Made by a program: the position numbers and the translations under genes. The notes under the pieces were generated by a model that did not search any database, was not told the DNA's origin, and saw only the letters and a program-made list of their open reading frames with translations. Below, in pieces: positions 1 through 63,600 of a DNA stretch of 64,000 bases. Origin of the DNA: Auanema rhodensis (Eukaryota > Animalia > Nematoda); NCBI GenBank assembly GCA_964057225.1, contig OZ059900.1, positions 26,722,001-26,786,000 on the forward strand, in the 5' to 3' direction. Positions within the stretch are counted from its first letter, which is position 1, and each line of letters opens with the position of its first letter.

Positions 1-323
1 TCTATGAATAAGTCTAAGCATGAGATTTATGACTAAGCATATGACTAAGTCTAAGCATGAGATCTATGACTAAGTCTAAGCATGAGATCTATGACTAAGT
101 CTAAGCATGAGATCTATGACTAAGTCTAAGCATGAGATTTATGACTAAGTCTAAGCATGAGATCTATGACTAAGTCTAAGCATGAGATCTATGACTAAGT
201 CTAAGCATGAGATCTATGACTAAGTCTAAGCATGAGATCTATGACTAAGTCTAAGCATGAGATCTATGACTAAGTCTAAGCATGAGATCTATGACTAAGT
301 TTAAGCATGAGATCTATGACTAA
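1..323 (-). repeat. 25-bp telomere-variant tandem repeat (G-strand GCTTAGACTTAGTCATAGATCTCAT), ~13 copies, runs off the window start
   Basis: Unit ATGAGATCTATGACTAAGTCTAAGC repeats with a 25-bp period; it contains two degenerate TTAGGC units and grades directly into canonical GCCTAA repeats. Confidence 0.95.
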
Positions 324-338
324 GCCTAAGCCTAAGCC
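320..338 (-). repeat. Short canonical nematode telomere tract (TTAGGC)x3
   Basis: CTAAGCCTAAGCCTAAGCC on the + strand. Confidence 0.9.
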
Positions 339-4131: not shown

Positions 4132-4388
4132 TTAAACAGATGAATTTAAGACCTCCATGTATTTAACTGGTGGAAGTTCACCTCTAACATCCATAGCTTC
4201 CATCTCTTTTGCGAAGATTCTATGTCGAATCGACATCGTAAAGGCCACTTGGTAATAAACTAAGTTTAGCCGGGATGCCCCATATTTATCAATTAAAGCA
4301 TTCTCTGGAAGAGAGAGGTTCATAGTCCACCTATCCTGGAGTCTTAACCTAGCCAAGTAAATGGAATCTCTAACCATCTTTTGGTCCT
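4132..4388 (-). pseudogene. 5'-truncated coding fragment (C-terminus of an unknown protein), cut at a telomere-like junction
   Basis: 81-aa ORF; the frame stays open upstream of the Met (QDQK-MVRDS) up to the GGCTTAGGCTTA junction at 4389. Confidence 0.4.
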
Positions 4389-4760
4389 GGCTTAGGCTTA
4401 ACTATCAAACTTTGGTTCAGGTATATCGAGCTTAGGCTTAATTATCGAACTCAGACTTAGGTATATCAAGCATAAAAAGCTTTTCCAAAATTAGGCTTTT
4501 TTCATCTTTGAGCTTATGCATATTCCGATTAAGGCTCATGCTTCGAGAAAGGCCTAGATTAAATCAGATTTATATTGATTTAGATTTTGTCATAAAGTTC
4601 TGGAAGAACAATCTGTACTTAATGTAATTTTCAATCTTCTTCAACAATCTACAATCTGTACTTAATGTAATTTTAATGTAATTGATGTACATCTCCAGCG
4701 AATCTCAAATAAATATCAAACTAGTTCTTGACTAAACAACAGAAGGTTTTCCCTTGACCA

Positions 4761-4960
4761 TGGAATGTTCTAGAATATTTTAGAATATTCAGGAATGTTC
4801 TAGAGTGTTCTAGAATGTTATGGAATGTTCTGGAATGTTTTAGAATATTCAGGAATGTTCTAGAATGTTCTAGAATGTTCTGGAATGTTCTAGAATGTTC
4901 TAGAATGTTTTAAAATAATCTGGAATATTTTAGAATATTCTCGAATGGAATAGAATGTTC
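4761..4960. promoter_or_regulatory. 10-bp tandem array (TAGAATGTTC) x20 forming contiguous heat-shock-element (nGAAnnTTCn) matches
   Basis: GAATGTTCTAGAATGTTC is a perfect alternating nGAAn array. Function is not shown. Confidence 0.6.
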
Positions 4961-5294
4961 CTTTTATTAATTTTGTAATAATATAGAACAATCAATAGTT
5001 ACATTATGTATTATGTAATTGCAGATTAGAAGAAAGTCTGAAGTAAATCAATAGTCACATGATGGATTTCGTAATTGTTAATCAAAAGTACATCTCAAGT
5101 AAATATCAAGTAAATCAATAGTCACATGATGGATTTCGTAATTGTTCATCAAAAGTACATCTCAAATAAATCTCAAGTAAATCTCAGACTAGATATCAAG
5201 TAAACAACAAGAGGTTTTCACTTGACCATGGAATATTCTCGAATGGAATAGAATGTTCCCTTTATTAATTTTGTAATAATATAGAACAATCAAT

Positions 5295-6280
5295 AGCTAC
5301 ATTATGTATTTTGTAATTGCAGATTAGAAGAAAGTTTGAAGTAAATCAATAGTCACATGATGGATTTCGTAATTGTTAATCAAAAGTACATCTCAAGTAA
5401 ATATCAAGTAAATCTCAAACTAGATATCATGTAAACAACAAGTAAGTCTCAAGTAAATCTCAAGTAAATCTCAAACTAGATATCATGTAAACAACAAGTA
5501 ACTCTCAAGTAAATCTCAAGTAAATCTCAAACTAGATCTCATGTAAACAACAAGTAAATCTCAAGTAAATCTCAAGTAAATCAATAGTCACATGATGGAT
5601 TTCGTAATTGTTAATCAATAGTACATCTCAAGTAAATATCAAGTAAATCTCGAACTAGCTCTCATGTAAACAACAAGTAAATCTCAAGTAAATCTCAAAC
5701 TAGATCTCATGTAAACAACAAGTAAATCTCAAGTAAATCTCAAGTAAATCAATAGTCACATGATGGATTTCGTAATTGTTAATCAATAGTACATCTCAAG
5801 TAAATCTCAAGTAAATCTCAAACTAGATATCATGTAAACAACAAGTAAATCTCAAGTAAATCTCAAGTTAATCTCAAACTAGATATCATGTAAACAACAA
5901 GTATATCTCAAGTAAATCTCAAACTAGATCTCATGTAAACAACAAGTAAATCTCAAGTAAATCTCAAACTAGATCTCATGTAAACAACAAGTAAATCTCA
6001 AGTAAATCTCAAACTAGATATCATGTAAACAACAAGTAAATCTCAAGTAAATCAATAGTCACATGATGGATTTTGTAATTGTTAATCAAAAGTACATCTC
6101 AAGTAAATATCAAGTAAATCTCAAACTAACTCTATTGTAAACAACAAGTAAATCTCAAGTAAATCTCAAGTAAATCAATAGTCACATGATGGATTTCGTA
6201 ATTGTTAATCAAAAGTACATCTCAAGTAAATATCAAGTAAATCTCAAACTAGATCTCATGTAAACAACAAGTAAATCTCA
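5295..6280 (+). repeat. Spacer of the foldback, built from 11-bp AAGTAAATCTC units and longer composite units
   Basis: Recurrent AAGTAAATCTC, CAAACTAGATCTCATGTAAACAAC and AATCAATAGTCACATGATGGATTTCGTAATTG blocks. Confidence 0.9.
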
Positions 6281-6614
6281 ATTGATTGTTCTATATTATT
6301 ACAAAATTAATAAAGGGAACATTCTATTCCATTCGAGAATATTCCATGGTCAAGTGAAAACCTCTTGTTGTTTACTTGATATCTAGTCTGAGATTTACTT
6401 GAGATTTATTTGAGATGTACTTTTGATGAACAATTACGAAATCCATCATGTGACTATTGATTTACTTGATATTTACTTGAGATGTACTTTTGATTAACAA
6501 TTACGAAATCCATCATGTGACTATTGATTTACTTCAGACTTTCTTCTAATCTGCAATTACATAATACATAATGTAACTATTGATTGTTCTATATTATTAC
6601 AAAATTAATAAAAG

Positions 6615-6814
6615 GAACATTCTATTCCATTCGAGAATATTCTAAAATATTCCAGATTATTTTAAAACATTCTAGAACATTCTAGAACATTCCAGAACAT
6701 TCTAGAACATTCTAGAACATTCCTGAATATTCTAAAACATTCCAGAACATTCCATAACATTCTAGAACACTCTAGAACATTCCTGAATATTCTAAAATAT
6801 TCTAGAACATTCCA
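6615..6814. promoter_or_regulatory. Second HSE-like array (mirror copy in the right arm)
   Basis: (GAACATTCTA)n, the reverse complement of 4761-4960. Confidence 0.6.
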
Positions 6815-7751
6815 TGGTCAAGGGAAAACCTTCTGTTGTTTAGTCAAGAACTAGTTTGATATTTATTTGAGATTCGCTGGAGATGTACATCAATTACATT
6901 AAAATTACATTAAGTACAGATTGTAGATTGTTGAAGAAGATTGAAAATTACATTAAGTACAGATTGTTCTTCCAGAACTTTATGACAAAATCTAAATCAA
7001 TATAAATCTGATTTAATCTAGGCCTTTCTCGAAGCATGAGCCTTAATCGGAATATGCATAAGCTCAAAGATGAAAAAAGCCTAATTTTGGAAAAGCTTTT
7101 TATGTTTGATATACCTAAGTCTGAGTTCGATAATTTAATATATGATAGTTAAGCCTAAGCTCGATTTACCTAAGCTAGAGTTTGATAGTTATGCCTTAAG
7201 CCAAATTTTGTTTCCATTTCAAGTGAAATTGTTTTCGAAGATTCTGGAACTTCTAGAACATTCGATAGTTTTTCAGAAAGTTCATAAACTTATTTTGATC
7301 CCGATAACTGGAACTTAAATATGCAGCAGAATCAGCAACATCAACTTCTCGCTTTCCTTTTATTTATTGCATTTTGTTTCATATTATTTTATATTATAGT
7401 AATGTAAATTACGTTTATAAATATTAAAAATTTTCTTCTTCTAGAACTTTCGATTGTTTTCCAGAAATTCATTTTTTTATTATTTCTCTTTACTGTTCCT
7501 TTATCCAAGCTTAAATCAATATTCGCGTAAGTTGCAATCGGGGGCTAAAACGGTGATGACTCAAGCGCCTTTGGCCATCCCACGGTTTCTGGGAAGATGT
7601 CGCCCAGGATAAGGCATGAATCATCCTCCTACAGCTTTAACCTTCCCACTCACAACATCTCGGGTATTCATAATCTGAACCCGCCCCCCCAAACATCTCT
7701 CTGCTTCTTTTTACCTCCTTCCGCTCCATAGTATCTTGCCTCCTCGGGTTA

Positions 7752-7861: not shown

Positions 7862-8485
7862 ATAAACTTCAATGCCGAATCTTTGATTTCGGTCATAACA
7901 GAAAAATTGAATAAAGGAGGTAAGAAATCTGGGACGTTGTCAACAATAGCCGATGCCCTCAGTACTACTTCATACAGTAGGATGAAAACTACAATAGAGT
8001 ATGTCTGCGATAACCTCAAATCATCTGTACTAACCAACAAGCTTTATTTGATGGCCGTCATTCTGATTAGATTGTTATTCAAATCAGATTCTCATGTGTT
8101 GAAACAGCTGGGTTCAGAAAATCAGCAGCCCCTTTTACCAGGATTTCCAACGGTTGAACAACACAAGTTGTACCTCCTGAAAGAACAGCTCAAACCGCAC
8201 ACTCCTCTCCTCGGATATTTTCTGACTTTATGCGATGCTGCAGCGAAGTCATCTGACACGTCTGGTTTAAACAAGCCCCAAGCTGACTTTTTTGCTAGAT
8301 TTTTCAGAGTGAGGTGTGCCTACTACGGGACTACGGCAGTTTCTATTTTCATGTCCGTTAGAAGTGCGGAAATTTTCCGTTGTCCTGAGTTCAATCGTAG
8401 GCTTCTGTCTAAGATGACGAGGTCTAGCTTTCAAAAGGTTATGGTTGCCTTGAGGACGAATCAGAACAAAGATCATCCAATATAG
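7862..8485 (+). pseudogene. Endogenous viral element: rhabdovirus-like nucleoprotein internal fragment
   Basis: YLMAVILIRLLFKSDSHVLK and RCAYYGTTAVSIF...LLSKMTRSSFQKVMVALRT resemble the A-x-x-L-x-RL-x-x-KS and S-x-T-G-M-H-A-x-x-L-F blocks of plant-rhabdovirus/varicosavirus N (recalled, not searched). It is intronless, lacks an ATG at the frame start, and its 3' end is cut by the 42-bp array. Confidence 0.55.
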
Positions 8486-10114
8486 CTAAGCCTAAGCTCA
8501 AAGATCAATATCTAAGCCTTAATATAGCTAAGCCTAAGCTCAAAGATCAATATCTAAGCCTTAATATAGCTAAGCCTAAGCTCAAAGATCAATATCTAAG
8601 CCTCAATATAGCTAAGCCTAAGCTCAAAGATCAATATCTAAGCCTCAATATAGCTAAGCCTAAGCTCAAAGATCAATATCTAAGCCTCAATATAGCTAAG
8701 CCTAAGCTCAAAGATCAATATCTAAGCCTCAATATAGCTAAGCCTAAGCTCAAAGATCAATATCTAAGCCTCAATATAGCTAAGCCTAACCTCAAAGATC
8801 AATATCTAAGCCTTAATATAGCTAAGCCTAAGCTCAAAGATCAATATCTAAGCCTTAATATAGCTAAGCCTAAGCTCAAAGATCAATATCTAAGCCTCAA
8901 TATAGCTAAGCCTAAGCTCAAAGATCAATATCTAAGCCTCAATATAGCTAAGCCTAAGCTCAAAGATCAATATCTAAGCCTCAATATAGCTAAGCCTAAG
9001 CTCAAAGATCAATATCTAAGCCTCAATATAGCTAAGCCTAAGCTCAAAGATCAATATCTAAGCCTCAATATAGCTAAGCCTAAGCTCAAAGATCAATATC
9101 TAAGCCTCAATATAGCTAAGCCTAAGCTCAAAGATCAATATCTAAGCCTCAATATAGCTAAGCCTAAGCTCAAAGATCAATATCTAAGCCTCAATATAGC
9201 TAAGCCTAAGCTCAAAGATCAATATCTAAGCCTCAATATAGCTAAGCCTAAGCTCAAAGATCAATATCTAAGCCTCAATATAGCTAAGCCTAAGCTCAAA
9301 GATCAATATCTAAGCCTCAATATAGCTAAGCCTAAGCTCAAAGATCAATATCTAAGCCTCAATATAGCTAAGCCTAAGCTCAAAGATCAATATCTAAGCC
9401 TCAATATAGCTAAGCCTAAGCTCAAAGATCAATATCTAAGCCTCAATATAGCTAAGCCTAAGCTCAAAGATCAATATCTAAGCCTCAATATAGCTAAGCC
9501 TAAGCTCAAAGATCAATATCTAAGCCTCAATATAGCTAAGCCTAAGCTCAAAGATCAATATCTAAGCCTCAATATAGCTAAGCCTAAGCTCAAAGATCAA
9601 TATCTAAGCCTCAATATAGCTAAGCCTAAGCTCAAAGATCAATATCTAAGCCTCAATATAGCTAAGCCTAAGCTCAAAGATCAATATCTAAGCCTCAATA
9701 TAGCTAAGCCTAAGCTCAAAGATCAATATCTAAGCCTCAATATAGCTAAGCCTAAGCTCAAAGATCAATATCTAAGCCTCAATATAGCTAAGCCTAAGCT
9801 CAAAGATCAATATCTAAGCCTCAATATAGCTAAGCCTAAGCTCAAAGATCAATATCTAAGCCTCGATATAGCTAAGCCTAAGCTCAAAGATCAATATCTA
9901 AGCCTCAATATAGCTAAGCCTAAGCTCAAAGATCAATATCTAAGCCTCAATATAGCTAAGCCTAAGCTCAAAGATCAATATCTAAGCCTCAATATAGCTA
10001 AGCCTAAGCTCAAAGATCAATATCTAAGCCTCAATATAGCTAAGCCTAAGCTCAAAGATCAATATCTAAGCCTCAATATAGCTAAGCCTAAGCTCAAAGA
10101 TCAATATCTAAGCC
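8479..10114 (-). repeat. 42-bp telomere-variant tandem repeat, ~39 nearly identical copies
   Basis: Unit AATATAGCTAAGCCTAAGCTCAAAGATCAATATCTAAGCCTC; the G-strand contains GGCTTAG and GCTTAGGCTTAG. Confidence 0.97.
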
Positions 10115-10133
10115 CCGAATAAATTATATATAG

Positions 10134-12278
10134 AATATTTAAGGAGAATCAATACATATGTGGATACGAGACTGTAAAATCAGATGGTTTCGGAGACTAT
10201 AAATTAAGTAAGGGCGGAAAAGTGTGGGACGCGCACATTTTCAGAAATTTCTATGAGAAGGTAACTCTACTTTGTAACTCGCCTAATAGGAGGTTTTCAG
10301 AATGGGAGCAGCACCTTTTATGGATTCTCCATTAACCACTGTAAAATGCATAGCAATATTTACCTTGCGGATCTAGGTTAGACTGTTGTGAATAAATGAT
10401 ATCTACATTCATTTATATTTATATTTAAGGTTATATTACGCCGGATATCCCTCGTTTACTGTTCAGAACAAAGAAGATCATTAGAGCTGGAGACCAGCTC
10501 TGCTGGGATTACACAGGATATTCTAATACTAATAGAGTCGATTTCGGCGATTCCTATATCTGTGTGAGTTTGAATAAGAAGGTTTTCTCTATAAGTCCTA
10601 TTTCAGTTGATGAACCAAAAAAAAATTTATGAGTGCTACATTTCAACCCCCTTTTCTCTGAAATTTAACAAAAAATTCCGTTCTCCTGGAGCTATGATAC
10701 AAACTCAAGTATCATCTTATTTCGAGCCTGCCAAAAAAAAAAAAAGGAATGTCCGTGAGTTATCAAGAATTATATATATTTTAATGAGATTATCAAGGAA
10801 AATGAAGAAGTTGAGGTTGAAGAGGAGGAAGAAGAAGAGGAGGAGGCCGAAAACTGGCTGGAAACTCAGTGTGACAATCTCATTAAATCGAATTATGAAG
10901 ATGAGGACGAAGAAAAAGAAGATGAGGAGGACGAAGATGAGGAGGAGGATGCTGAGGCTCTTTTGGAAACTTTGCTGAAGGAAGCTACTAGCGAGGAAGA
11001 AGATGAAAAAGGTGAAATTTAATATGCAATAACTTTTTATAAAGATGAAACCTTCAGGCAGAAGCCCTACACACCCTAATCTGTCAGAGCTATTGAAAAC
11101 TTTCGATTTCATTACAAAGAAAGGTGATAATTAATTATTGAAGAAATAAATATTATTTTGTAGTCGATATTGAAAAACAACAAGAGGCCAACTTGATTAT
11201 TTCCTTTTTTAAGAAAAAAGAAAAAAAGGTATTACTCCCCTGATGGGGTGGTTAATCAAACTGTTTAGATGGGAGAGAATATTAGGAGAAGAATAACCCT
11301 ATGCAAGCTATCATACCCCCTTGAGCGATATAAATTCAAGAATTTCACAGAATATGAAGAGAAAGTTAGATCCCATTTGTCGGGTAAAAAACGGGAGGAA
11401 AAATTATATTATATACCCAAAAAATCTGATTCTGTTAAATCCAATGAAAGAGAGAAAGTTCTGGGTACACTTTTTTTATTAGCAGAAAATGATTTGAGAA
11501 AGGTATTACATTATCCAATATAAGTACATTAGATTTTAGAGTGTCCTCAACATGCTTGTGCTGTTGCTCCATGATACTAAGAAGGAAGAGCTCTGCGCCA
11601 GGAAACAAATGCTAGAGGTTACTGCTACGTTATGGAACATGTGGAAGAAGGTTATTTTTTCAAAAGAAGAAGAAGAAATTGACAACAGCATTAAGGAAGT
11701 CAGATTCAGGTTGAGGGAGGTAATAAAAGAGTATATATAATCATATTGTAATATCATCTCAGGAAATTAACCTTCATTCAAATAAAGAAAAAGGTCCTTT
11801 CACCTTTTTCACCTTTTACTATGCGTTTCAACGATTTTTTGTTTCCGAAATGGAAAAGTTAACATCGTGGGATGACTTCGTTATGTCTAAAGCTGAATGG
11901 AAAAAAATGGGATTGTTGATAGCGTTATCTATCAACGCATTCAACTGCTCCCGCACTGAACACTACTACAAACTGTTTGTACCTGACATTAAAAAGGTTG
12001 GTATTATTCAGAAGAAATTAATAAATAATCATAGGAAGAAGAAGAGGAGGTGATATCTTTGAATATAAGAGTTGGAAAGGGAGGAAGAAGTCAACTGCTG
12101 CTTCTACCGAAACACTATGAATATTTTTCAAGATGTTATCTCTCAGCTAGCAAACGATATGCTGTTCTTTACAAGAAAAGCAAACTGCTTTTCCCTTTCA
12201 GTCTAAGCTCGAAAAGCCTTATAACTAATTTAAAGGAAGTCTTTGACGTACCGTGGCCAATAAGTGAAGGATTCGCAG
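10134..12278 (+). pseudogene. Multi-exon SET-domain + acidic linker + tyrosine recombinase gene (Crypton-like element), 5'-truncated and broken
   Basis: Exons 10134-10260, 10301-10376 and 10430-10563 splice in frame to IFKENQYICGY...YGFSINHCKMHSNI...DIPRLLFRTKKIIRAGDQLCWDY (SET motifs NH-x and GxxLxxDY). An E/D-rich exon lies at ~10789-11011. Later exons give AFNCSRTE (catalytic R) and IRVGKGGRSQLLLLP (catalytic K). At least one in-frame stop at ~11077. Confidence 0.8.
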
Positions 12279-12308
12279 TTAGTAAAAGCATTAGTAAAAG
12301 AAAAATTT

Positions 12309-12736
12309 TCAAATAAAATTCCCTAGATACTTTGTAAAGTTATCTTCCAGTTTTGACTTTTCTAATAGCTTCTCTTTGTATTCGAATTCGAAATCTCTCC
12401 CTGCGCAATATCTCAGTTTAGTATAGCTAGCAAGGGCTGCAAATTCAAAATAAGTTCATTCCATAATTATAACCTCACCTATCATTAGATCGCTCAACCC
12501 ATATGAACTGTTTCTGATATCCATTGAATGACCTTCGGCCGTTGCCTGGAGTTCGTTGTCTCGTTCTGATCGGTTTAATTCATGGAGCTTGTCGAAGCTG
12601 TCAACAGCTTTTATAGAGCTTTGTCTATAAGAAGATCATATTATTTGGAATAATGACTACTTACCTTATAGCTGCGAATCCTTCACTTATTGGCCACGGT
12701 ACGTCAAAGACTTCCTTTAAATCAGTTATAAGGCTT
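12309..12736 (-). pseudogene. Inverted 3' portion of the tyrosine recombinase gene
   Basis: 12672-12736 is an inverted copy of 12214-12278. It continues FAAIR|QSS (40-bp intron 12625-12664) to AEGHSMDIR. Removing one A from an A-run restores GHSMDIRNSSY (H+9=Y, canonical YR spacing) and an in-frame last exon ending at TGA 12309-12311. Confidence 0.78.
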
Positions 12737-12802
12737 AGGCTTAGGCTTAGGCTTAGGCTTAGGCTTAGGCTTAGGCTTAGGCTTAGGCTTAGGCTTAGGC
12801 TT
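12731..12802 (+). repeat. Interstitial telomere tract (AGGCTT)x12
   Basis: 72 bp of perfect TTAGGC repeat. Confidence 0.98.
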
Positions 12803-13240
12803 GACAGACCACCACGATTTAGTCATCTCATATGTTTCGCTCATAACAGTCACTGTAGCTTTTGTTATCGTCTAGGACGGTTATTTCATACTAATATTGT
12901 TACAATTCTTTTCTAATTACTCATTTTATCTTGATTTAATTATTTCTATTATCTTCATACGTACTCCTTATTTCGATTTAAAATTTTATTTTATCTCTAT
13001 TTTCATCCTGATTTAATGATTTTTATTAACTTCATTTTTTTCAACTTCATCTCTTGATTCATTGTTCATTGTATCTTTTTCATTCTTCTTATCTTATTTT
13101 TCATTCTTCTTGAAAATTTTTCGAAATTAATAATTTTTTTTAGTGTCCACTCAAGATTTAGTGAAATATTTTATAATAAAATCGAACCTTAAGGTAAATT
13201 ATTTGCTTTTCTGAAATTCTGAATAATAATTTCATTCAGT

Positions 13241-13957
13241 ATGTCTTACGTGGTTCTCTTGTCCAAAGAAAAACTTCATGGAAATTCGTTTGCTTATAAT
13301 GTAGTGTATGTACACTGTGAAAAAAAAGGAATACGCAAATCCGAAAACTTCATTACTCGCGAACAATATGAAGCATTGTTGGAAAAAAACACTATCTCAG
13401 AAACATTTGATTTTTCTCAAATTGAAATGCCATTGCCAGCACAAACATCAACGAGTTTTTTTGATATTGTAGCAGATATCGAGAACAATAACTCATTCCC
13501 CGCCTGCACATCTGATGAAAGATGTTTCAGAAAATTGTTAAAATATCTAGATTTTCACTTTTTTGATTCCAAAATCTTCTCCTACGGCATATCCATTCAA
13601 GTAAAATGTAATAGTAATGTCACAATGAAAGACAAACATGCTTATACTACGAGAAAATGCAATAATATTTCGATAACATTTTTTTGTTCTTCATTTCTTG
13701 AAAAAAAGCGCGACAGTGCAAAAAAAACTGCTTTTTCATTCAGAAAAGACAAAAAAATGGAATTACTTTCGGTTATGGTTCATGAACTCATTCATGTTTA
13801 TGAATTTCTACACATAAAGTGTCTAATAAACCCAAGTATTATACCCATATCTATTGCTTCCAGTTTATTGCTAGAACACGGGGCAACTTTTTGTTCGCTT
13901 ATGAATCATATTAATCGCAGGAAAGCAAAATTTGTTTTAGAAAGATATGCACATTGA
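13241..13957 (+). CDS. SprT-like zinc metalloprotease domain protein, 238 aa, intronless
   Basis: LLSVMVHELIH (HExxH) followed by EHGATFCSLMNHIN (HG-x-x-F-x-x-x-M-x-x-IN), the SprT/Spartan/GCNA signature. A TTCAG acceptor lies just before the ATG and AATAAA is at 13976-13981. Confidence 0.8.
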   Translation: MSYVVLLSKEKLHGNSFAYNVVYVHCEKKGIRKSENFITREQYEALLEKNTISETFDFSQIEMPLPAQTSTSFFDIVADIENNNSFPACTSDERCFRKLLKYLDFHFFDSKIFSYGISIQVKCNSNVTMKDKHAYTTRKCNNISITFFCSSFLEKKRDSAKKTAFSFRKDKKMELLSVMVHELIHVYEFLHIKCLINPSIIPISIASSLLLEHGATFCSLMNHINRRKAKFVLERYAH

Positions 13958-14059
13958 TTTGTTTACTTTGAACTCAATAAATATTGTTGAAACCTCATCG
14001 TCGTATTTTTATTTTCTCAGGAACTTAATTTATACAATATTAAAATAAGAAACATGAAA

Positions 14060-17000
14060 CATTTGGAAAAACATATGACCTTTTAAATGTTGAATTTTTT
14101 GGTGATTTCAAGATTGTTTAAAACAATTTATCTCAAAATAGACACATAGAAAATGAATTGTGAGTTGATATATGAATGAAAATGGGTCATTCAACATATT
14201 ATCGCAAGGCGCTTGTTACAGGATCAATTTTGGAAAAACATATGACCTTTTAAATGTTGGTTTTTTTTTAATTTTTGGATGGCTCAAGTTTGAAAGAACA
14301 TATGATCTTTTGAATCTTGGGTTTTTTGGTGATTTTCACAATTTTTAAAATAGTTCATCTCAAAAATGACACATAGGAAATCAATCGATAGTTCATATAT
14401 GAATGAGAATGTATCATTCAGCTTACTTTCGAAAAGGGCTTGTTGTTGGCTCAAGTTTGAAAGAACATATGATCTTTTAAAAGTTCGTGGTTTTCCGTGA
14501 TTTGTACTTTTTTTATAACAGTTTATCTGAAAAATGACACACAGAAAATAGATCGTGGGTTGATATATGATACAAAATGTGTTATTCAACATAGAATCAG
14601 AGAGGGCTTGTCACTGACTCAAATTTGGAGGAACATATGAACAACTTTTATGTTATGATGAAACATGACCACAATGATCAACGTCAGATCTCATGTGTAT
14701 TTTCTCAAATTTGATTCATGGAAAAGTTCTGTTTTTCTCAAAATGTGTGAAAATAAATATGTAGAACTTAATTCCGAACGGGGCTATTATTTATTTTACC
14801 AGGAACTCATTCTATCACACTGAAACTGATTCGACTGGTTTTATCGATTGATTGAAAGAAACAGTCTCTTTTCGAGTTTCTATGTTTAAATGTTGAAAGC
14901 GTTTGAATGAACATTTTTTGATTTTTAACTTTCAACCTCAAATTTGTTATAGCAATTATATATTTTTGATAGATTCGAGAAGTTTATTTTTTTTATAAAA
15001 TGTTTCAGTACAAACTCATTTAAGAAATTTATGGAAGAACTTCTCTCATATCTACAATTTCTTTTTTCTTTATTTGACGCAATTGAGAAAATTCTTTTTG
15101 TTTCTTGAAATAATTACAAAGATTTGTGATTTGCGATTTGCCTGGTGATTTTCACAACTTTCAAAGTAGTTTATCTCAAAAATAACATACAAGAACTAGA
15201 TTGTGGGTTAATATATGGAACAAAATGTGTTATTCAACAGATTATCGCAAAATGGCTTGTTACTGACTCAAATTTGGAAGAACATATGACCTTTAAAAAT
15301 TTAGGTTTTTGGGTGATTTGCACAATTTTTAGAATAGTTTATTTCAAAAATGACACATAGAAAATATATCGTGGGTTAATATATGAATGAAAAAGTGTCA
15401 TTCAACAGGTTATCAAAAGGGGCTTGTTAATGACTGAAATTCGGAAAAACTTATGATCTCTTAAAACTCTTGGTTTTTGGTGATTTGTACGTTTTTTAAA
15501 GCAGTTTAAATCAAAAATGACACACAGCAACTAGATCGTGGGTTAAAATATGAAACAAAATGTGTTATTCAACAGATTATCGCAAAAAGCTTGTTACTGA
15601 CTCAAATTTGGAAGAACATATGACCTTTTAAAATTTGGGTTTTTGGGTGATTTGCACAATTTTTAGAATAGTTTATTTCAAAAATGACATATAGAAAATA
15701 TATGGTGAGTTGATATATAAATGAAAATGTGTCATTCAACAGATTATCAAGAGAGGCTTGTTACTTACTGAAATTCGGAAAAACTTATGATCTCTTAAAA
15801 CTCTTGGTTTTTGGGTGATTTTCACAATTTTTAAAATAGTTTAAAACTACTCCGATACAAAAAGCTTAATTCGAATTTCTTCATTTTTGAACGAAAAACT
15901 GTATACTAACTATATTTATTTAAAACGAGTAACTATATTTTTTTAAAACGAGTAGTTAAAATTTCAACTTTTTCTAATTCAGGCAAGTAGTTGAAATTCA
16001 ACTACTCCAAGATGAGTAATCTCCCAAAAAATAACATTTATACATCATTTCACAATTCAATTCGTATGTGGCATTTTTGAGATAAACTTTTTTTAAAATT
16101 ATGAAATTCACCAAAAAACCCAACATTTGAAAGGTCATATGTTTTTCCAAACTTGAGTCAGTAACAAGCCCCTTCTGATAATCTGTTAAATGACACATGT
16201 TCATTCAGATATCAACTCACAATTCAATTCGTATGTGTCGATTTTGAGATAAATTGTTTTAAACAATCTTGAAAATCACCCAAAAACCAAGAGTTTTAAG
16301 AGATCATAAGTTTTTCCGAATTTCAGTAAGTAACAAGCCTCTCTTGATAATCTGTTGAATGACACATTTTCATTTATATATCAACTCACCAAGTATTTTC
16401 TATATGTCATTTTTGAAATAAACTATTCTAAAAATTGTGCAAATCACCCAAAAACCCAAATTTTAAAAGGTCATATGTTCTTCCAAATTTGAGTCAGTAA
16501 CAAGCTTTTTGCGATAATCTGTTGAATAACACATTTTGTTTCATATTTTAACCCACGATCTAGTTGCTGTGTGTCATTTTTGATTTAAACTGTTTTAAAA
16601 AACGTACAAATCACCAAAAACCAAGAGTTTTAAGAGATCATAAGTTTTTCCGAATTTCAGTCATTAACAAGCCCCTTTTGATAACCTGTTGAATGACACT
16701 TTTCAATTCATATATCAACCCACGATATATTTTCTATGTGTCATTTTTGAAATAAACTATTCTAAAAATTGTGCAAATCACCCAAAAACCCAAATTTTTA
16801 AAGGTCATATGTTCTTCCAAATTTGAGTCAGTAACAAGCCATTTTGCGATAATCTGTTGAATAACACATTTTGTTTCATATTTTAACCCACGATCTAGTT
16901 GCTGTGTGTCATTTTTGTTTTAAACTGTTTTAAAAAACGTACAAATCACCAAAAACCAAGAGTTTTAAGAGATCATAAGTTTTTCCGAATTTCAGTCATT

Positions 17001-17196
17001 AACAAGCCCCTTTTGATAACCTGTTGAATGACACTTTTTCATTCATATATTAACCCACGATATATTTTCTATGTGTCATTTTTGAAATAAACTATTCTAA
17101 AAATTGTGCAAATCACCCAAAAACCCAAATTTTTAAAGGTCATATGTTCTTCCAAATTTGAGTCAGTAACAAGCCATTTTGCGATAATCTGTTGAA
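14060..17196. repeat. Diverged ~167-bp repeat family with a unique insert; orientation flips at ~15845
   Basis: Recurrent GGTGATTT...CAAAAATGACAC...TTCAACAGATTATC...CTTGTTACTGACTCAAATTTGGAAGAACATATGACC blocks at ~167-bp spacing; they are reverse-complemented after ~15845. Confidence 0.88.
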
Positions 17197-20100
17197 TAAA
17201 TTTCAAAGTCATGGTAACCATGACTTTGAAATTTACGTGAACTTTAATTTATGCTAATTAAATGTACACGTGATGTGCACTTGGTATGTAACTCGCTTCA
17301 CGTGAAAGATAAAGAGATGTGGTTTTCAAAATTAAATTCCTCATGTCCATATTAGTCTAAAAACAAATTTTTATTGATATTGGTTCATGGTAACCATGTC
17401 TTTGAAATTTACGTGAACTTTAATTTATGCTAATTAAATGTACACGTGATGTGCACTTGGTATGTAACTCGCTTCACGTGAAAGATAAAAAGATGCGGTT
17501 TTCAAAATTAGATTCCCCATGTCCATATTAGTCTAAAAACAAATTTTTATTGATATTGGTGCATGGTAACCATGTCTTTGAAATTTACGTGAACTTTAAT
17601 TTATGCTAATTAAATGTACACGTGATGTGCACTTGGTATGTAACTCGCTTCACGTGAAAGATAAAGAGATGCGGTTTTCAAAATTAGATTCCCCATGTCC
17701 ATATTAGTCTAAAAACAATTTTTTATTGATATTGGTGCATGGTAACCATGACTTTGAAATTTACGTGAACTTTAATTTATGCTAATTAAATGTACACGTG
17801 ATGTGCACTTGGTATGTAACTCGCTTCACGTGAAAGATAAAGAGATGCGGTTTTCAAAATTAGATTCCCCATGTCCATATTAGTCTAAAAACAAATTTTT
17901 ATTGATATTGGTTCATGGTAACCATGTCTTTGAAGTTTACGTGAACTTTAATTTATGCTAATTAAATGTACACGTGATGTGCATTTGGTATGTAACTCGC
18001 TTCACGTGAAAGATAAAGAGATGCGGTTTCCAAAATTAGATACCCCATGTCCATATTAGTCTAAAAACAAATTTTTATTGATATTGGTTCATGGTAACCA
18101 TGACTTTGAAATTTACGTGAACTTTAATTTATGCTAATTAAATGTACACGTGATGTGCACTTGGTATGTAACTCGCTTCACGTGAAAGATAAAGAGATGT
18201 GGTTTTCAAAATTAGATTCCCCATGTCCATATTAGTCTAAAAACAAATTTTTATTGATATTGGTTCATGGTAACCATGTCATTGAAATTTACGTGAACTT
18301 TAATTTATGCTAATTAAATGTACACGTGATGTGCACTTGGTATGTAACTCGCTTCACGTGAAAGATAAAGAGATGCGGTTTTCAAAATTAGATTCCCCAT
18401 GTCCATATTAGTCTAAAAAAAAATTTTTATTGATATTGGTGCATGGTAACCATGACTTTGAAATTTACGTGAACTTTAATTTATGCTAATTAAATGTACA
18501 CGTGATGTGCACTTGGTATGTAACTCGCTTCACGTGAAAGATAAAGAGATGCGGTTTTCAAAATTAGATTCCCCATGTCCATATTAGTCTAAAAACAAAT
18601 TTTTATTGATATTGGTTCATGGTAACCATGACTTTGAAATTTACGTGAACTTTAATTTATGCTAATTAAATGTACACGTGATGTGCACTTGGTATGTAAC
18701 TCGCTTCACGTGAAAGATAAAGAGATGCGGTTCTCAAAATTAGATTCCCCATGTCCATATTAGTCTAAAAACAAATTTTTATTGATATTGGTTCATGGTA
18801 ACCATGTCTTTGAAATTTACGTGAACTTTAATTTATGCTAATTAAATGTACACGTGATGTGCACTTGGTATGTAACTCGCTTCACGTGTAAGATAAAGAG
18901 ATGCGGTTTTCAAAATTAGATTCATCATGTCCATATTAGTCTAAAAACAAATTTTTATTGATATTGGTGCATGGTAACCATGACTTTGAAATTTACGTGA
19001 ACTTTAATTTATGCTAATTAAATGTACACGTGATGTGCACTTGGTATGTAACTCGCTTCACGTGAAAGATAAAGAGATGCGGTTTTCAAAATTAGATTCC
19101 ACATGTCCATATTAGTCTAAAAACAAATTTTTATTGATATTGGTTCATGGTAACCATGTCTTTGAAGTTTACGTGAACTTTAATTTATGCTAATTAAATG
19201 TACACGTGATGTGCATTTGGTATGTAACTCGCTTCACGTGAAAGATAAAGAGATGCGGTTTCCAAAATTAGATTCCCCATGTCCATATTAGTCTAAAAAC
19301 AAATTTTTATTGATATTGGTTCATGGTAACCATGACTTTGAAATTTACGTGAACTTTAATTTATGCTAATTAAATGTACACGTGATGTGCACTTGGTATG
19401 TAACTCGCTTCACGTGAAAGATAAAGAGATGTGGTTTTCAAAATTAGATTCCCCATGTCCATATTAGTCTAAAAACAAATTTTTATTGATGTTGGTTCAT
19501 GGTAACCATGTCATTGAAATTTACGTGAACTTTAATTTATGCTAATTAAATGTACACGTGATGTGCACTTGGTATGTAACTCGCTTCACGTGAAAGATAA
19601 AGAGATGCGGTTTTCAAAATTAGATTCCCCATGTCCATATTAGTCTAAAAAAAAATTTTTATTGATATTGGTGCATGGTAACCATGACTTTGAAATTTAC
19701 GTGAACTTTAATTTATGCTAATTAAATGTACACGTGATGTGCACTTGGTATGTAACTCGCTTCACGTGTAAGATAAAGAGATGCGGTTTTCAAAATTAGA
19801 TTCATCATGTCCATATTAGTCTAAAAACAAATTTTTATTGATATTGGTGCATGGTAACCATGACTTTGAAATTTACGTGAACTTTAATTTATGCTAATTA
19901 AATGTACACGTGATGTGCCCTTGGTATGTAACTCGCTTCACGTGAAAGATAAAGAGATGCGGTTTTCAAACTTAGATTCCCCATGTCCATATTAGTCTAA
20001 AAACAAATTTTTATTGATATTGGTTCATGGTAACCATGACTTTGAAATTTACGTGAACTTTAATTTATGCTAATTAAATGTACACGTGATGTGCACTTGG

Positions 20101-57784: not shown

Positions 57785-58674
57785 AATGGAAATGTGCATA
57801 TTGGTGCTGGAATCGCTACGCATGCCTATGTTGTTCCCGAAAACTTGAAATATGTGAATTACTCGTGAGTTGTTTTTCATTTATGCTGATGTATTATATG
57901 TGCTTTTCAGTACTGCTGTGAAAGGTTTTGTACAATTTGGAGAACTGAAGTTAAGAATTTCGGATCTTGCCGGACCTCTTCTGAATGCTGTCAATCTTGC
58001 TACTGTTGCGACTGCCAGTTATGCTGCAACTCCTGCTGATGTCACACTTGTTTTTGGATGTGCCCTATCTACTGGATTAAGTTCTTGGAATGAAAATGGA
58101 CCGATACGCGAGATGAATGCCGAGGAACTCAAGAGTTTGGAGAAATACTTCCGTGTAGCTGATGGGGAGAAGATCTTTGATGAAGTTGTGCACACCTTCC
58201 TCGTGCCTGCGGGTTTTTCACCTGCAATGTATGCTGAATCAGTGAAAGTGATGATCGCGGGAAAGCTACAGTGGTGGACCACGGGACATCACTTAGGATC
58301 TGTACGGACTGAAAAAGCTGGGGACGAAACGAGAAGAACCGGATATTTATGGAAAGTGCTGAGAGAGTCAACATCATGGACCGATATTTCATCTTCAACG
58401 AATCTGATCCTTCTTCATGCAGCGCTCCATTTCTGTGACACGAGGAAAGTAATGAAAACCATAACCGGATCTGAGAAAATTAGGATTCAATTCGACCAAA
58501 TTGTTCCTATAACTACTGGAGGAGACGTAAGGATTAGGATTGCTCCATACGGTGCCGGAGCGAAAAGATGGGTGAATTCTTATAAGTCATGCACTGCAAT
58601 GAAAGCATCCCCAGTCATCTACTTTCTTGATCGGATCTTACAAAATGACATTGTTGACGTCCTCAATTATGGGC
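57782..58674 (+). pseudogene. Endogenous viral element: qinvirus-like nucleoprotein fragment with one 46-bp intron (57865-57910)
   Basis: KLQWWTTGHHLG, ALHFCDTRKVM and DVRIRIAPYGAGAKR match the order of the K-x-N-W-W-x-x-N-H-H-x-G, H-W-x-S-T and D-x-x-L-R-x-x-x-x-P-A-G-T motifs I recall for Qinviridae N. GTGAGT...TTTTCAG splices exon 57782-57864 in frame (YVNYS|TAVKGF). It is bounded by the satellite at the 5' end and by TTAGGC at the 3' end. Confidence 0.68.
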
Positions 58675-58800
58675 TTAGGCTTAGGCTTAGGCTTAGGCTT
58701 AGGCTTAGGCTTAGGCTTAGGCTTAGGCTTAGGCTTAGGCTTAGGCTTAGGCTTAGGCTTAGGCTTAGGCTTAGGCTTAGGCTTAGGCTTAGGCTTAGGC
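58672..58800 (+). repeat. Interstitial telomere tract GGC(TTAGGC)x21
   Basis: Perfect repeat directly fused to the coding frame (...LNYG|LRLRLR). Confidence 0.98.
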
Positions 58801-59780
58801 AAGCGTGATTCAGAAACATGGTGGGGGCTCGCCGCCCCCACACCCCCGCTTGCTTCTGGCTCAGATACTATTACGACAATTTAGTGTTCACATGGTTACA
58901 CGGTATGGCCACAATGTGTATATCATCTTAAGTGTGGTACGAGTATCACAATTCATTCATTTCAGGAATCGTATGCTATAATTAAGATTGGGGGCTAGCC
59001 GCCCCCACACCCCCGCTTTCTTCTGCTTCAAATACTATAAAGTCAATTTACTGTTCACATGCTTACGCGGTATGGCTATAATGTATATATCATCTTAAGA
59101 GTGGTATGATTATCAGAATGTTATACATCAAAACTCGTATGGCCACAATGTATATATCATCTTAAGAGTGGTATGATTATCAGAATGTTGTACATCAAAA
59201 CTCGTATGGCCACAATGTATATATCATCTTAAGTGTGGTATGATTATCAGAATGTTGTACATCAAAACTCGTTTGGCCACAATGTATATATCATCTTATC
59301 CCAAAAACAAAGCTTCTTCAGCGGTATCCATGCGGATTTTATAAAAAATCTCGCTGCGTTGCCCTAAATTGTACAGGAGAAACATACAAAGCATGACGGA
59401 CGCTTCTCGGAGCATAATTTTTTTTTCCTGAAAATAAAACTTCAAGATTAAGAAAAAAATAGCATTACGTCTTCAGAGCTTGTTTCTTCATAGGTCGAAA
59501 GAAAATTCTGGAGACGAGGATGGGCAAAACATCGGAATTTCCTATAAAGCATATAAAACGTAGGGAGCGTGGTAGCCATTTTCGATAAAGTTTTTTCTTT
59601 ATTCAGGCCCTCAAAGTTGAAGAATTTTGATAACTAGTGCTTGGTGAATTACCGGTTCAACAATTTTCCTTATTCTTTTAATGACTTTAGTCGACCTATG
59701 AAGAAACAAGCTATGAAAACGTAATGCTATTTTTTTCTTAATCTTGAAGTTTTATTTTCATGTTTTTCTGAATCACGCTT
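58801..59780. mobile_element. ~1-kb non-coding element with terminal inverted repeats, sitting between convergent telomere tracts
   Basis: AAGCGTGATTCAGAAA at 58801-58816 and its perfect reverse complement at 59765-59780. Inside are two GGGGGCT(C/A)GCCGCCCCC hairpin blocks (~58823, ~58990), ~66-68-bp tandem units (~59070-59299) and a nested ~70-bp inverted repeat (59429-59498 / 59691-59760). Confidence 0.7.
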
Positions 59781-59819
59781 GCCTAAGCCTAAGCCTAAGC
59801 CTAAGCCTAAGCCTAAGCC
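59781..59819 (-). repeat. Interstitial telomere tract (TTAGGC)x6 on the minus strand
   Basis: (GCCTAA)6GCC on the + strand. Confidence 0.98.
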
Positions 59820-60660
59820 ATCCAGGACACTTCTTCCGAATAAACAGCTTGAGCTGCACTACATGCCGCTTGTTGATAACGCAAGTGGGGCTTGTCGGTA
59901 GTAGCCTTCCAGACATACCACCCCCAGTCATCCAACTCATAGAATGTCCTAGCCGCTTGAGCGCCTAAAGCTACACTATGGCAGTAAGCCAAAGTTCCCA
60001 TAAACAATTCGATTGCCGTTTCAGAATGGCACATATCCAGCGTGGGAGAGGCTTCATTGGTTACTTGAAGGCTCAGGGAGCTGAAGAAATTACACAGTGG
60101 TTTTCTAAACTTGGGCTTTGGGAATACGGTGGCCAAGGGAGTAAGATAAGAAGGCACAGCAAATAGAATCATCCCACTCTCGGGGTGTCTTCTCAAGCGC
60201 TGGTTGGCGAGCAGAGCAGCATGTTGCCGCCCATATTCGCATTGAAGGCCGTAGCCTAACATTCCTGCTAGTTGTAGCACGGTAGTCTTCCAGTTATCAG
60301 GTGAGAGCGTGGTGAACCCTGCGCGACGCACCAGATCTTGTGGCAGAACATCAGCTGGCTGGTCATTACCAACAGCAAGCTCGTTGAAAAGCCTGTCGTC
60401 AATAATTATCAGCACAGCGGCTCGCCCATTGTCGCCAATCAGTTCAGGGACGTACACTCGATTAGCCAACGGATCAAGGTTAACTACTCCCTCCAGAGGT
60501 GGGGTGTTAACAGAGACGCGCTGGTCAGGGTGAGCAGCAAGCAAGGTGTAAGCGGCGAAAGCCGAACTCCATGTAAGGCCAGTCTTCCTGAGCACGATTG
60601 TAGCTCCTGGACTACAGGCATTGCCTGCCAAAAGATTGCGCATGTTTTGGTTCATTGGAA
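59813..60660 (-). pseudogene. GC-rich intronless coding fragment (~280 codons), probable endogenous viral element, possibly toti-like capsid
   Basis: Uninterrupted frame at roughly 50% GC in a very AT-rich background. It is cut by the 167-bp repeat family at the 5' end and by TTAGGC at the 3' end (the stop comes from the telomere repeat). The family call rests only on loose resemblance (LLAAHP...P; W..TVLQLAGMLG..QC..G). Confidence 0.45.
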
Positions 60661-63600
60661 ACATATATGATCTTTTAAAAGTTCGTGGTTTTCGGTGATT
60701 TGTACTTTTTTTATAACAGTTTATCTGAAAAATGACACACAGGAAATAGATCGTGGGTTGATATATGATACAAAATGTGTTATTCAACATAGAATCAGGG
60801 AGGGCTTGTCACTGACTCAAATTTGGAGGAACATATGAACAACTTTTATGTTATGATGAAACATGACCACAATAATCAACGTCAGATCTCATGTGTATTT
60901 TCTCAAATTTGATTCATGGAAAAGTTCTGTTTTTCTCAAAATGTGTGAAAATAAATATGTAGAACTTAATTCCGAACGGGGCTATTATTTATTTTACCAG
61001 GAACTCATTCTATCACACTGAAACTGATTCGACTGGTTTTATCGATTGATTGAAACAGTCTCTTTTCGAGTTTCTATGTTTAAATGTTGAAAGCGTTTGA
61101 ATGAACATTTTTTGATTTTTAACTTTCAACCTCAAATTTGTTATAGCAATTATATATTTTTGATAGATTCGAGAAGTTTATTTTTTTTTATAAAATGTTT
61201 CAGTACAAACTCATTTAAGTATATGATGAGACAAGAATTATAAAAATTATGGAAGAACTTCTCTCATATCTACAATTTCTTTTTTCTTTATTTGACGCAA
61301 TTGAGAAAATTCTTTTTGTTTCTTGAAATAATTACAAAGATTTGTGATTTGCGATTTGCCCGGTGATTTGTACGTTTTTTAAAGCAGTTTAAATCAAAAA
61401 TGACACACAGCAACTAGATCGTGGGTTAAAATATGGAACAAAATGTGTTATTCAACAGATTATCGCAAAATGGCTTGTTACTGACTCAAATTTGGAAGAA
61501 CATATGACCTTTAAAAATTTGGGTTTTTGGGTGATTTGCACAATTTTTAGAATAGTTTATTTCAAAAATGACACATAGAAAATATATCGTGGGTTGATAT
61601 ATGAATGAGAAAGTGTCATTCAACAGGTTATCAAAAGGGGCTTGTTAATGACTGAAATTCGGAAAAACTTATGATCTCTTAAAACTTTTGGTTTTTGGTG
61701 ATTTGTACGTTTTTTAAAACAGTTTAAATCAAAAATGACACACATCAACTAGATCGTGGGTTAATTTATGAAACAAAATGTGTTATTCAACAGATTATCG
61801 CAAAAAGCTTGTTACTGACTCAAATTTGGAAGAACATATGACCTTTTAAAATTTGGGTTCTTGGGTGATTTGCACAATTTTTAGAATAGTTTATTTCAAA
61901 AATGACATATAGAAAATATATGGTGAGTTGATATATAAATTAAAATGTGTCATTCAACAGATTATCGAAAGAGGCTTGTTACTGACTGAAATTCGGAAAA
62001 ACTTATGATCTCTTAAAACTCTTGGTTTTTGGTGATTTGAAAATTTTATAAAAAAGTTTATCTCAAAATAGACACACAGCAACTAGATCGTGGGTTAATT
62101 TATGAAACAAAATGTGGTATTCAACAGATTATCGCAAAAAGCTTGTTACTGACTCAAATTTGGAAGAACATATGACCTTTTAAAATTTGGGTTTTTGGGT
62201 GATTTGCACAATTTTTAGAATAGTTTATTTCAAAAATGACACATAGAAAATATATCGTGAGTTGATATATGAATGAAAAAGTGTCATTCAACAGGTTATC
62301 AAAAAGGGCTTGTAACTGACTGAAATTCGGAAAAACTTATGATCTCTTAAAACTCTTGGTTTTTGGTGATTTGTACGTTTTTTAAAACAGTTTAAATCAA
62401 AAATGACACATACGAATTGAATTGTGAGTTAATATCTGAATGAACATGTGTTATTTAACAGATTATCAGAAGGGGCTTGTTACTGACTCAAGTTTGGAAA
62501 AACATATGACCTTTAAAAATTTGGGTTTTTGGGTGATTTGCACAATTTTTAGAATAGTTTATTTCAAAAATGACACATAGAAAATATATCGTGAGTTGAT
62601 ATATGAAGGAAAAAGTGTCATCCAACAGGTTATCAAAAGAGGCTTGTTACTGACTGAAATTCGGAAAAACTTATGATCTCTTAAAACTCTTGGTTTTTGG
62701 GTGATTTTCACAATTTTTAAAATAGTTTATCTCAAAATCGACACATACGAATTGAATTGTGAGTTGATATCTGAATGAACATGTGTCATTTAACAGATTA
62801 TCATAAGGGGCTTGTTACTGACTCAAGTTTGGAAAAACATATGACCTTTCAAATGTTGGGTTTTTTGGTGAATTTCACAATTTTAAAAAAAGTTTATCTC
62901 AAAAATGCCACATACGAATTGAATTGTGAAATGATGTATGAATGTTATTTTTTGGGAGATTACTCATCTTGGAGTAGTTGAATTTCAACTACTTGCCTGA
63001 ATTAGCAAAAGTTGAAATTTTAACTACTCGTTTTAAAAAAATATAGTTACTCGTTTTAAATAAATATAGTTAGTATACAGGTTTTCGTTCAAAAATGAAG
63101 AAATTCGAATTAAGCTTTTTGTATCGGAGTAGTTGAAATTCAACTACTTCCCCGCAATCAGTTGGTGAACAAACAATAAAGAAATTCAAATCAAGTTCTT
63201 TGTATCGGAGCCATAATCAATGTGTATTTTCTCGAATTTGATTCATGGAAAAGTTCTGTTTTTCTCAAAATGTGTGAAAATAAATATGTAGAACTTAATT
63301 CCGAACGGGGCTATTATTTATTTTACCAGGAACTCATTCTATCACACTGAAACTGATTCGACTGGTTTTATCGATTGATTGAAACAGTCTCTTTTCGAGT
63401 TTCTATGTTTAAATGTTGAAAGCGTTTGAATGAACATTTTTTGATTTTTAACTTTCAACCTCAAATTTGTTATAGCAATTATATATTTTTGATAGATTCG
63501 AGAAGTTTATTTTTTTTTATAAAATGTTTCAGTACAAACTCATTTAAGTATATGATGAGACAAGAATTATAAAAATTATGGAAGAACTTCTCTCATATCT

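Follow-up and report, generated by a model that had tools for sequence, protein, structure and literature searches.

Short internal telomere tracts of mammals are modelled as repeats that telomerase inserts at internal breaks, in which case both flanks of the tract are contiguous in the empty site. Human fold-back inverted duplications have a 'disomic spacer' architecture: a single-copy spacer, contiguous with one of the two inverted arms, lies between them, and telomere repeats cap one arm at its outer end (Hermetz et al. 2014, PMC3907307). In nematodes, de novo telomere addition in Ascaris, Oscheius tipulae, Caenorhabditis auriculariae, C. monodelphis and C. elegans me8 places TTAGGC repeats directly on unique sequence (PMC9071541, PMC10980081, PMC13370393). 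Internal tracts and clusters of TTAGRC-containing units in nematode subtelomeres have been read as telomere damage repaired through alternative lengthening of telomeres (ALT) or break-induced replication (BIR) (Lim et al. 2023, PMC10760449), and the TALT of Seo et al. 2015 (PMC4595603) was compared alongside these traces. Here we describe a locus at positions 12214-12802 of a 64-kb stretch of DNA (the window, to which all coordinates refer) that is nematode-type in its telomere motif TTAGGC, its introns of 40-42 nt, its TTTCAG-type acceptors and its GC content of ~32%. The locus holds two truncated copies of an orphan gene in inverted orientation, one of which ends in a perfect TTAGGC tract. 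We favour, with a probability of about 0.55, the reading that it is the heritable scar of two successive chromosome breaks, a fold-back inverted duplication followed by telomere capping.

The two arms of the locus (12214-12278 and 12672-12736) are reverse complements of each other and are identical at 64 of 65 positions under a strict match; a repeat search gives wider arms of 68 nt at 97% (12214-12281 and 12669-12736). The sole difference is an A at 12227 where the reverse complement of 12723 has a G, which confirms the single differing position recorded in the first-pass annotation of this DNA. Self-BLAST of the arm returned the pair with E = 6.7e-27 as the only repeat of this segment within the window, and metagenome and genome contigs scanned for exact DNA matches to the arm yielded 0. 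Both arms are one coding exon of the orphan gene (Table 1). On the plus strand, a chain of short exons upstream of 12035 reaches back to ~10780, and the open frame of copy 1 at 12035-12278 passes through the future telomere site (…FPFSLSSKSLITNLKEVFDVPWPISEGFA), within a continuous open reading frame (ORF) at 12035-12316 that covers arm 1 and gives the truncated copy 1 a new stop at 12314-12316. On the minus strand, arm 2 keeps the reading frame of arm 1 (…SLITDLKEVFDVPWPISEGFA), and the two splices downstream of it preserve the frame through the split codons AG/A and G/CC. Copy 1 retains the upstream exons (U) and the arm exon (X) and is cut at 12278/12279, and copy 2 retains X together with the remainder of the gene (D) and breaks off at the telomere; the two copies overlap only by the 65 nt of X. 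Because copy 1 keeps U and X and copy 2 keeps X and D, the spacer is contiguous with arm 2 and inverted with respect to arm 1.

The layout of the locus is U-X-rc(D)-rc(X)-(TTAGGC)n, where rc denotes a reverse complement. On the minus strand the layout becomes telomere-X-D-rc(X)-rc(U): the gene segment first runs in its normal order and, once past D, reverses onto itself. The predicted in-frame continuity of arm 2 with the spacer (X, intron, B, intron, C) is as a fold-back would give, and the best reading of the arms is that a single gene underwent one fold-back inverted duplication, of which they form the two sides. At the fold-back junction the first base is mismatched and the following TA is matched (TTAG vs CTAT), an inverted microhomology of 0-2 nt that is within chance. 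The first-pass annotation had described arm 1 as the uncut copy and had considered two elements joined tail to tail. Arm 1 is indeed intact at the telomere site, but it is truncated at 12278/12279, 7 nt before the exon donor. Likewise, the gene copies are convergent, as a tail-to-tail arrangement would have them, but their truncations are complementary and overlap by exactly 65 nt, and we prefer one fold-back.

Homology searches of the broken gene were made exon by exon. Pfam searches with seven exon or ORF pieces gave no family for it, PDB sequence searches with two of its pieces gave no relative, a word search with an 88-aa ORF was blank, and HMMER with an 81-aa exon against 1.84 billion representative proteins gave 0 hits at E <= 0.001. 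A faint resemblance of the exons to a tyrosine-recombinase core (…SRTEH…, …GKGGRS…LLP…) was supported by no tool and was dropped.

The tract at the outer end of arm 2 (12731-12802) is a perfect (AGGCTT)12 with zero mismatches. Read outwards, which is along the minus strand for arm 1, arm 1 is GTTATAAGGCTT-TTCGAGCTTAGACTG and arm 2 is GTTATAAGGCTT-AGGCTTAGGC, such that arm 1 reads AAGGCTT-TTCGAG where arm 2 reads AAGGCTT-AGGCTT. Therefore, the first unit of the tract (12731-12736) is genomic, and the tract begins on an AGGCTT that pre-existed in the gene, as the first-pass annotation had proposed. The comparison of the arms equally upholds its use of the other arm as a pre-break reference at the telomere site, where the sequence of arm 1 diverges from the capped copy exactly at the repeat junction; this use would hold only if both arms descend from one sequence. 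Where within the six seed bases (12731-12736) the addition began is ambiguous, and the chance of at least six in-phase bases at a random break is 6/4096 = 0.0015. The G-rich strand of the tract runs 5'->3' rightwards, away from arm 2, and therefore the former chromosome end pointed right, following the G-strand orientation rule for telomere caps as given in PMC6800518. Since this orientation is dictated by the microhomology itself, it is not independent evidence. Two telomere-like hexamers lie 5 nt apart in the exon at the break (CTAAGC…AAGCCT, 12202-12219), and the one distal to the break is lost from the capped arm; this pair may be due to chance (~6% within 20 nt) or may mark a seed-rich spot that favours capping.

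Five tract starts are present in the window, at 12731, 58672, 59819(-), 338(-) and 4389. All five are in one phase, unique…GG/CTTAGGC, with AAGG/CTT, TGGG/CTT, ATGG/CTT, ATGG/CTT and CTGG/CTT. If phase were random, the four non-focal sites would agree with a chance of (1/6)^3, ~0.005, a value that assumes independence of the sites and includes two short tracts among the four. GG before de novo addition sites has been reported in both C. auriculariae and C. monodelphis (PMC13370393), and GGC priming has been proposed for O. tipulae (PMC10980081). C. elegans telomeres start with TTA or CTT, while Ascaris requires only 1 nt (PMC9071541). The uniform GG/CTTAGGC phase fits telomerase priming with a template-defined start. 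A search for a motif shared by the five tract starts found no 8-12-mer beyond shuffled controls within 110 nt upstream.

These features can be arranged into a history of the locus. A double-strand break would have occurred ~30 nt past the stop codon of the orphan gene, as the layout suggests, and the broken end would have folded back, or fused with its sister chromatid after unequal resection, to give an inverted duplication in which the gene tail (12279-12671, 393 nt) became a single-copy loop. The nematode is presumably holocentric, so no dicentric is required. A second break of the palindromic chromosome would then have fallen within the coding exon, only 65 nt into one arm. With its 65-bp stem (-108 kcal/mol vs -45 for shuffles, z = -15), the locus is strongly hairpin-prone, in keeping with another break near the centre of the palindrome. 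The junction shows TTAGGC repeats in register on a 3' end …AAGGCTT, which would have paired with the telomerase template, in the same GG/CTTAGGC phase as at all other tract starts in the window. The surviving arm 1 would therefore record the pre-break sequence. Finally, the short cap would have been internalised by fusion with another end; alternatively, BIR from an internal telomere tract elsewhere may have placed 12803 onwards beyond the cap. The reverse order, in which healing came first and inversion later, is less economical because an extra U-X copy from another chromatid would be needed. The further inverted duplications and the TTAGGC unit arrays of the window support a history of repeated breakage, a pattern that in nematode subtelomeres has been taken for the trace of earlier telomere damage and its repair (PMC10760449).

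A comparison with the known systems shows where the locus agrees with them and where it departs. It shares the fold-back layout of the human duplications, including the single-copy spacer contiguous with one arm and the capped outer end, but the human spacers measure 0.8-70 kb between Mb-sized arms, against a 393-nt spacer and a 65-nt retained arm here; in addition, the junction here has at most 2 nt of inverted microhomology and the cap is now internal (PMC3907307). As in nematode de novo addition, TTAGGC stands directly on unique sequence with GG (GGC) right before the added CTTAGGC (PMC10980081, PMC13370393), although the overlap is six nt here and only 1 nt is needed in Ascaris. Unlike at nematode elimination sites, no upstream motif shared by the tract starts was found, and the focal tract is fixed in assembled germline-type sequence and is internal, not a somatic end. 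With ALT- and BIR-derived subtelomeres (PMC10760449, PMC4595603) the window shares a perfect internal tract beside unique blocks and arrays of 25-bp and 42-bp units with the telomere motif, those in 40-474 and 8478-10114 resembling the 'TTAGRC-containing unit clusters' of panagrolaimid subtelomeres. In contrast to those subtelomeres (PMC10760449), the proximal junction can here be compared with its own pre-break sequence. The short perfect tract that starts at a microhomology also recalls the internal tracts of mammals, but what comes after AGGCTT in the reference arm bears no relation to the right flank here, and a simple repeat insertion with both flanks kept is rejected on this ground.

Several points weigh against the fold-back and capping history. 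The tract, now internal, measures only 72 bp and gives way to unique DNA at 12803. Judged by sequence, telomerase would be indistinguishable from recombination or end joining. Sister copies would not be expected to differ, and the one mismatch between the arms requires a later mutation; it must be such a later change or a sign of non-sister arms. The junction microhomology of at most 2 nt is uninformative either way. The gene has no detectable relatives, so that its coding status is predicted from reading frames and splice sites. Finally, the joins at 12278/12279, 12736/12737 and 12802/12803 are taken from one assembly. A short tract (72 bp) that ends abruptly in unique DNA would also suit a one-step join, in which a broken fold-back end that was never a free telomere annealed its 3' AGGCTT to an existing TTAGGC tract, either an internal tract or a short telomere elsewhere. 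Such a join could proceed by ligation, in end joining that relies on polymerase theta or microhomology, or by replication, microhomology- or break-induced, that copied the tract together with 12803 onwards, and with one event instead of two it predicts an identical sequence. For such blocks in nematode subtelomeres, BIR from internal telomere tracts has been put forward as the source (PMC10760449). A report on C. elegans, in which this ALT or BIR route is seen in telomerase mutants, describes shortened telomeres where DNA synthesis starts inside internal tracts, aided by polymerase theta (10.1101/2022.09.04.506531). Random microhomology joins, however, predict less well that 5/5 starts are in the GG/CTTAGGC phase. 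Homologous blocks at other chromosome ends are the key evidence for BIR in nematode subtelomeres (PMC10760449); here, 12803-14061 has no second copy within the 64-kb window and no inverted or direct match to the broken gene. We consider the one-step join possible but doubtful. It bears on two further proposals of the first-pass annotation. For telomerase healing, the seed and the G-strand pointing away from the arm stand, but telomerase itself is an interpretation, as a one-step join leaves an identical sequence; a later fusion at 12803 is not required, since a single join into an existing tract gives the same sequence.

Were the locus an assembly chimera, a telomere-ended contig or telomere-ended reads, from a germline or a somatic healed end, would have been wrongly joined at 12802/12803. 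Assemblies of eliminating nematodes do mix telomere-ended somatic with continuing germline reads (PMC13370393), the window is extremely repeat-rich, and an exact look-up of ten window ORFs, four of which cross junctions, found none of them in a public protein collection. Yet a tract of 72 bp is trivially spanned by any long read, two further perfect tracts of the window are also internal, and the fold-back part, with its 393-nt spacer and 65-nt arms, is unlike a library artefact. Library fold-back chimeras are spacer-less palindromes, and this form of artefact was rejected for the presence of the spacer; a wrong join at 12802/12803 is unlikely. The one mismatch in 65 nt and the patchwork of gene fragments in the region would agree with arms from two paralogues or mobile-element copies that were separately truncated and placed tail to tail, the telomere part being unchanged. 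Against such an origin, the truncations are complementary and overlap by only 65 nt, no other copy is present in the window, the search of representative proteins gave no relatives, there is no transposon domain, and more independent events are needed than for a fold-back; we judge it decidedly unlikely. The long terminal inverted repeats and the strong hairpin would further suit a transposon of the foldback or miniature inverted-repeat transposable element (MITE) type, 523 bp long (12214-12736) with 65-bp terminal inverted repeats, that landed beside a telomere-like tract. Its interior, however, runs on from one arm as the spliced tail of a gene, in frame; the arm is part, on the left, of a longer ORF, CTCGAA and AGGCTT at the flanks form no target-site duplication, and the window has no other copy. 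The transposon was rejected for its missing target-site duplication and gene-tail interior, and we find it scarcely credible.

On a wider scale, the window could be a germline-restricted, somatically eliminated chromosome-end domain, in a nematode with programmed DNA elimination, in which the perfect, GG-phased internal tracts would be heritable fossils of elimination-type breakage and telomere healing that at times took place in the germ line. If so, healed germ-line fragments would have been stitched together and the locus would be the before-and-after sequence of one event, a prospect that we hold to be highly unlikely. The present-day somatic break site suggested by the first-pass annotation is unsupported, no motif common to the five tract starts having been found, and there is no evidence for the focal tract as a programmed break site; the tract is fixed, short and internal.

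The processes to which the fold-back and capping history appeals, namely breakage, fold-back and capping, are already known, and the locus involves no new mechanism. It is instead a natural, base-pair-resolved example of a fold-back inversion combined with a second break and with repeats seeded on a 6-nt genomic match, with the pre-break sequence kept 450 bp from the capped arm. Together with the uniform GG/CTTAGGC phase, it provides one small observation on the choice of start by nematode telomerase, and it informs how broken and re-capped pieces make up satellite-rich chromosome-end domains. The locus would gain in value only if the site still served for breakage or if the domain were germline-restricted.

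Table 1. Features of the broken gene and its capped arm, followed by repeat features elsewhere in the window.
Feature	Position	Strand	Remarks
Copy 1: upstream exons (U) and exon with arm 1	10780-12278	+	Three-frame reading, canonical GT/AG borders
Arm 1 (X), reference copy at the telomere site	12214-12278	+	Left flank TCTAAGCTCGAA is the part lost from arm 2
Fold-back (disomy/inversion) junction	12278/12279		End of arm 1 (7 nt before donor) abuts far end of the 3' untranslated region of copy 2
Spacer, rest of gene (D)	12279-12671	-	393 nt, single-copy in window
3' untranslated region	12308-12279	-	30 nt
Stop codon	12311-12309	-	
Exon C	12436-12312	-	
Intron	12478-12437	-	42 nt, GTGAGG…TTGCAG
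Exon B	12624-12479	-	
Intron	12664-12625	-	40 nt, GTAAGT…TATAG
Last 7 nt of exon X, before GTAAGT donor	Within spacer	-	
Arm 2 (X'), 5' part of exon replaced by telomere repeats	12672-12736	-	One N->D difference (12723)
Genomic AGGCTT seed common to both arms	12731-12736	+	GG at 12732-12733 precedes CTTAGGC
Added repeats	12737-12802	+	66 nt, 11 perfect AGGCTT units
Distal junction …AGGCTT/GACAGACCACC	12802/12803		Followed by unrelated AT-rich DNA
Perfect internal TTAGGC tracts	12731-12802; 58672-58800; 59781-59819		n = 3 in window
25-bp unit array, unit with telomere motif	40-331		x11.7
42-bp unit array, unit with telomere motif	8478-10114		x39, 99% matches
Inverted duplication	4419-5294 / 6281-7156		Arms 876 nt, 99%; spacer 986 nt
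Inverted duplication	15143-15836 / 16258-16951		Arms 694 nt, 96%; spacer 421 nt
Inverted duplication	58762-58816 / 59765-59819		Arms 55 nt, perfect (39 nt telomere + 16 nt unique); spacer 948 nt
Inverted duplication	59429-59498 / 59691-59760		Arms 70 nt, 97%; spacer 192 nt

The DNA on either side of the locus contains further gene pieces. Between the 42-bp array and the broken gene lies the C-terminal remnant of a SET domain (…AGDQLCWDY…; Pfam E 0.087) at 10438-10566. Downstream of the tract, an intronless ORF of 238 aa (13241-13957) carries a HELIH…HG motif and has a weak SprT-like Pfam match (E 0.049); a word search with this ORF gave no relatives.

The largest feature of the window is a 176-bp satellite array of 40.6 kb (17209-57784, ~230 copies, 97% matches), flanked in both orientations by 167/334-bp arrays (14062-17199 and 61362-62914). 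The rest of the window is made of such 167/334-bp repeat arrays, telomere-motif unit arrays, internal TTAGGC tracts and short gene fragments, and as a whole the window looks like a subtelomere or an eliminated-type domain that was damaged repeatedly. An exact satellite 24-mer had 0 matches in public metagenome contigs, and Rfam and tRNA scans gave no matches. A 19-bp array accompanies the telomere-motif arrays in the regions 40-474 and 8478-10114. Besides the focal locus, the window has four more inverted duplications with spacers. The palindrome at 4340-7235 encloses ~1 kb of 11/22/56-bp arrays, and its outer arm ends traverse degenerate telomere-like 40-bp units.

Three ORFs end abruptly in telomere or telomere-derived repeats (57870-58671, 60640-59820 and 7883-8485). 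The third, of 200 aa, stops as soon as it enters the first unit of the 42-bp telomere-motif array; it may be one more piece of a gene that was cut off where a repeat begins. The other two, on the plus and minus strands respectively, are GC-rich (44-46%), intronless fragments of ~270 aa that face each other, and both are cut at the 3' end by a perfect TTAGGC tract. Viral-contig scans for both GC-rich ORFs gave no matches, a homology search with the ORF at 59822-60790 gave no relatives, no other search returned a relative of either fragment, and a single-sequence AlphaFold model had a pLDDT of 36; the two fragments could be foreign or virus-derived inserts. Within 58762-59819, a 67-bp tandem repeat and palindromic motifs rich in G/C are present in the 948-nt insert. 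The 16-nt unique part of the 55-nt inverted repeat at its ends is AAGCGTGATTCAGAAA, and one tract-to-unique junction occurs there twice, in opposite orientations.

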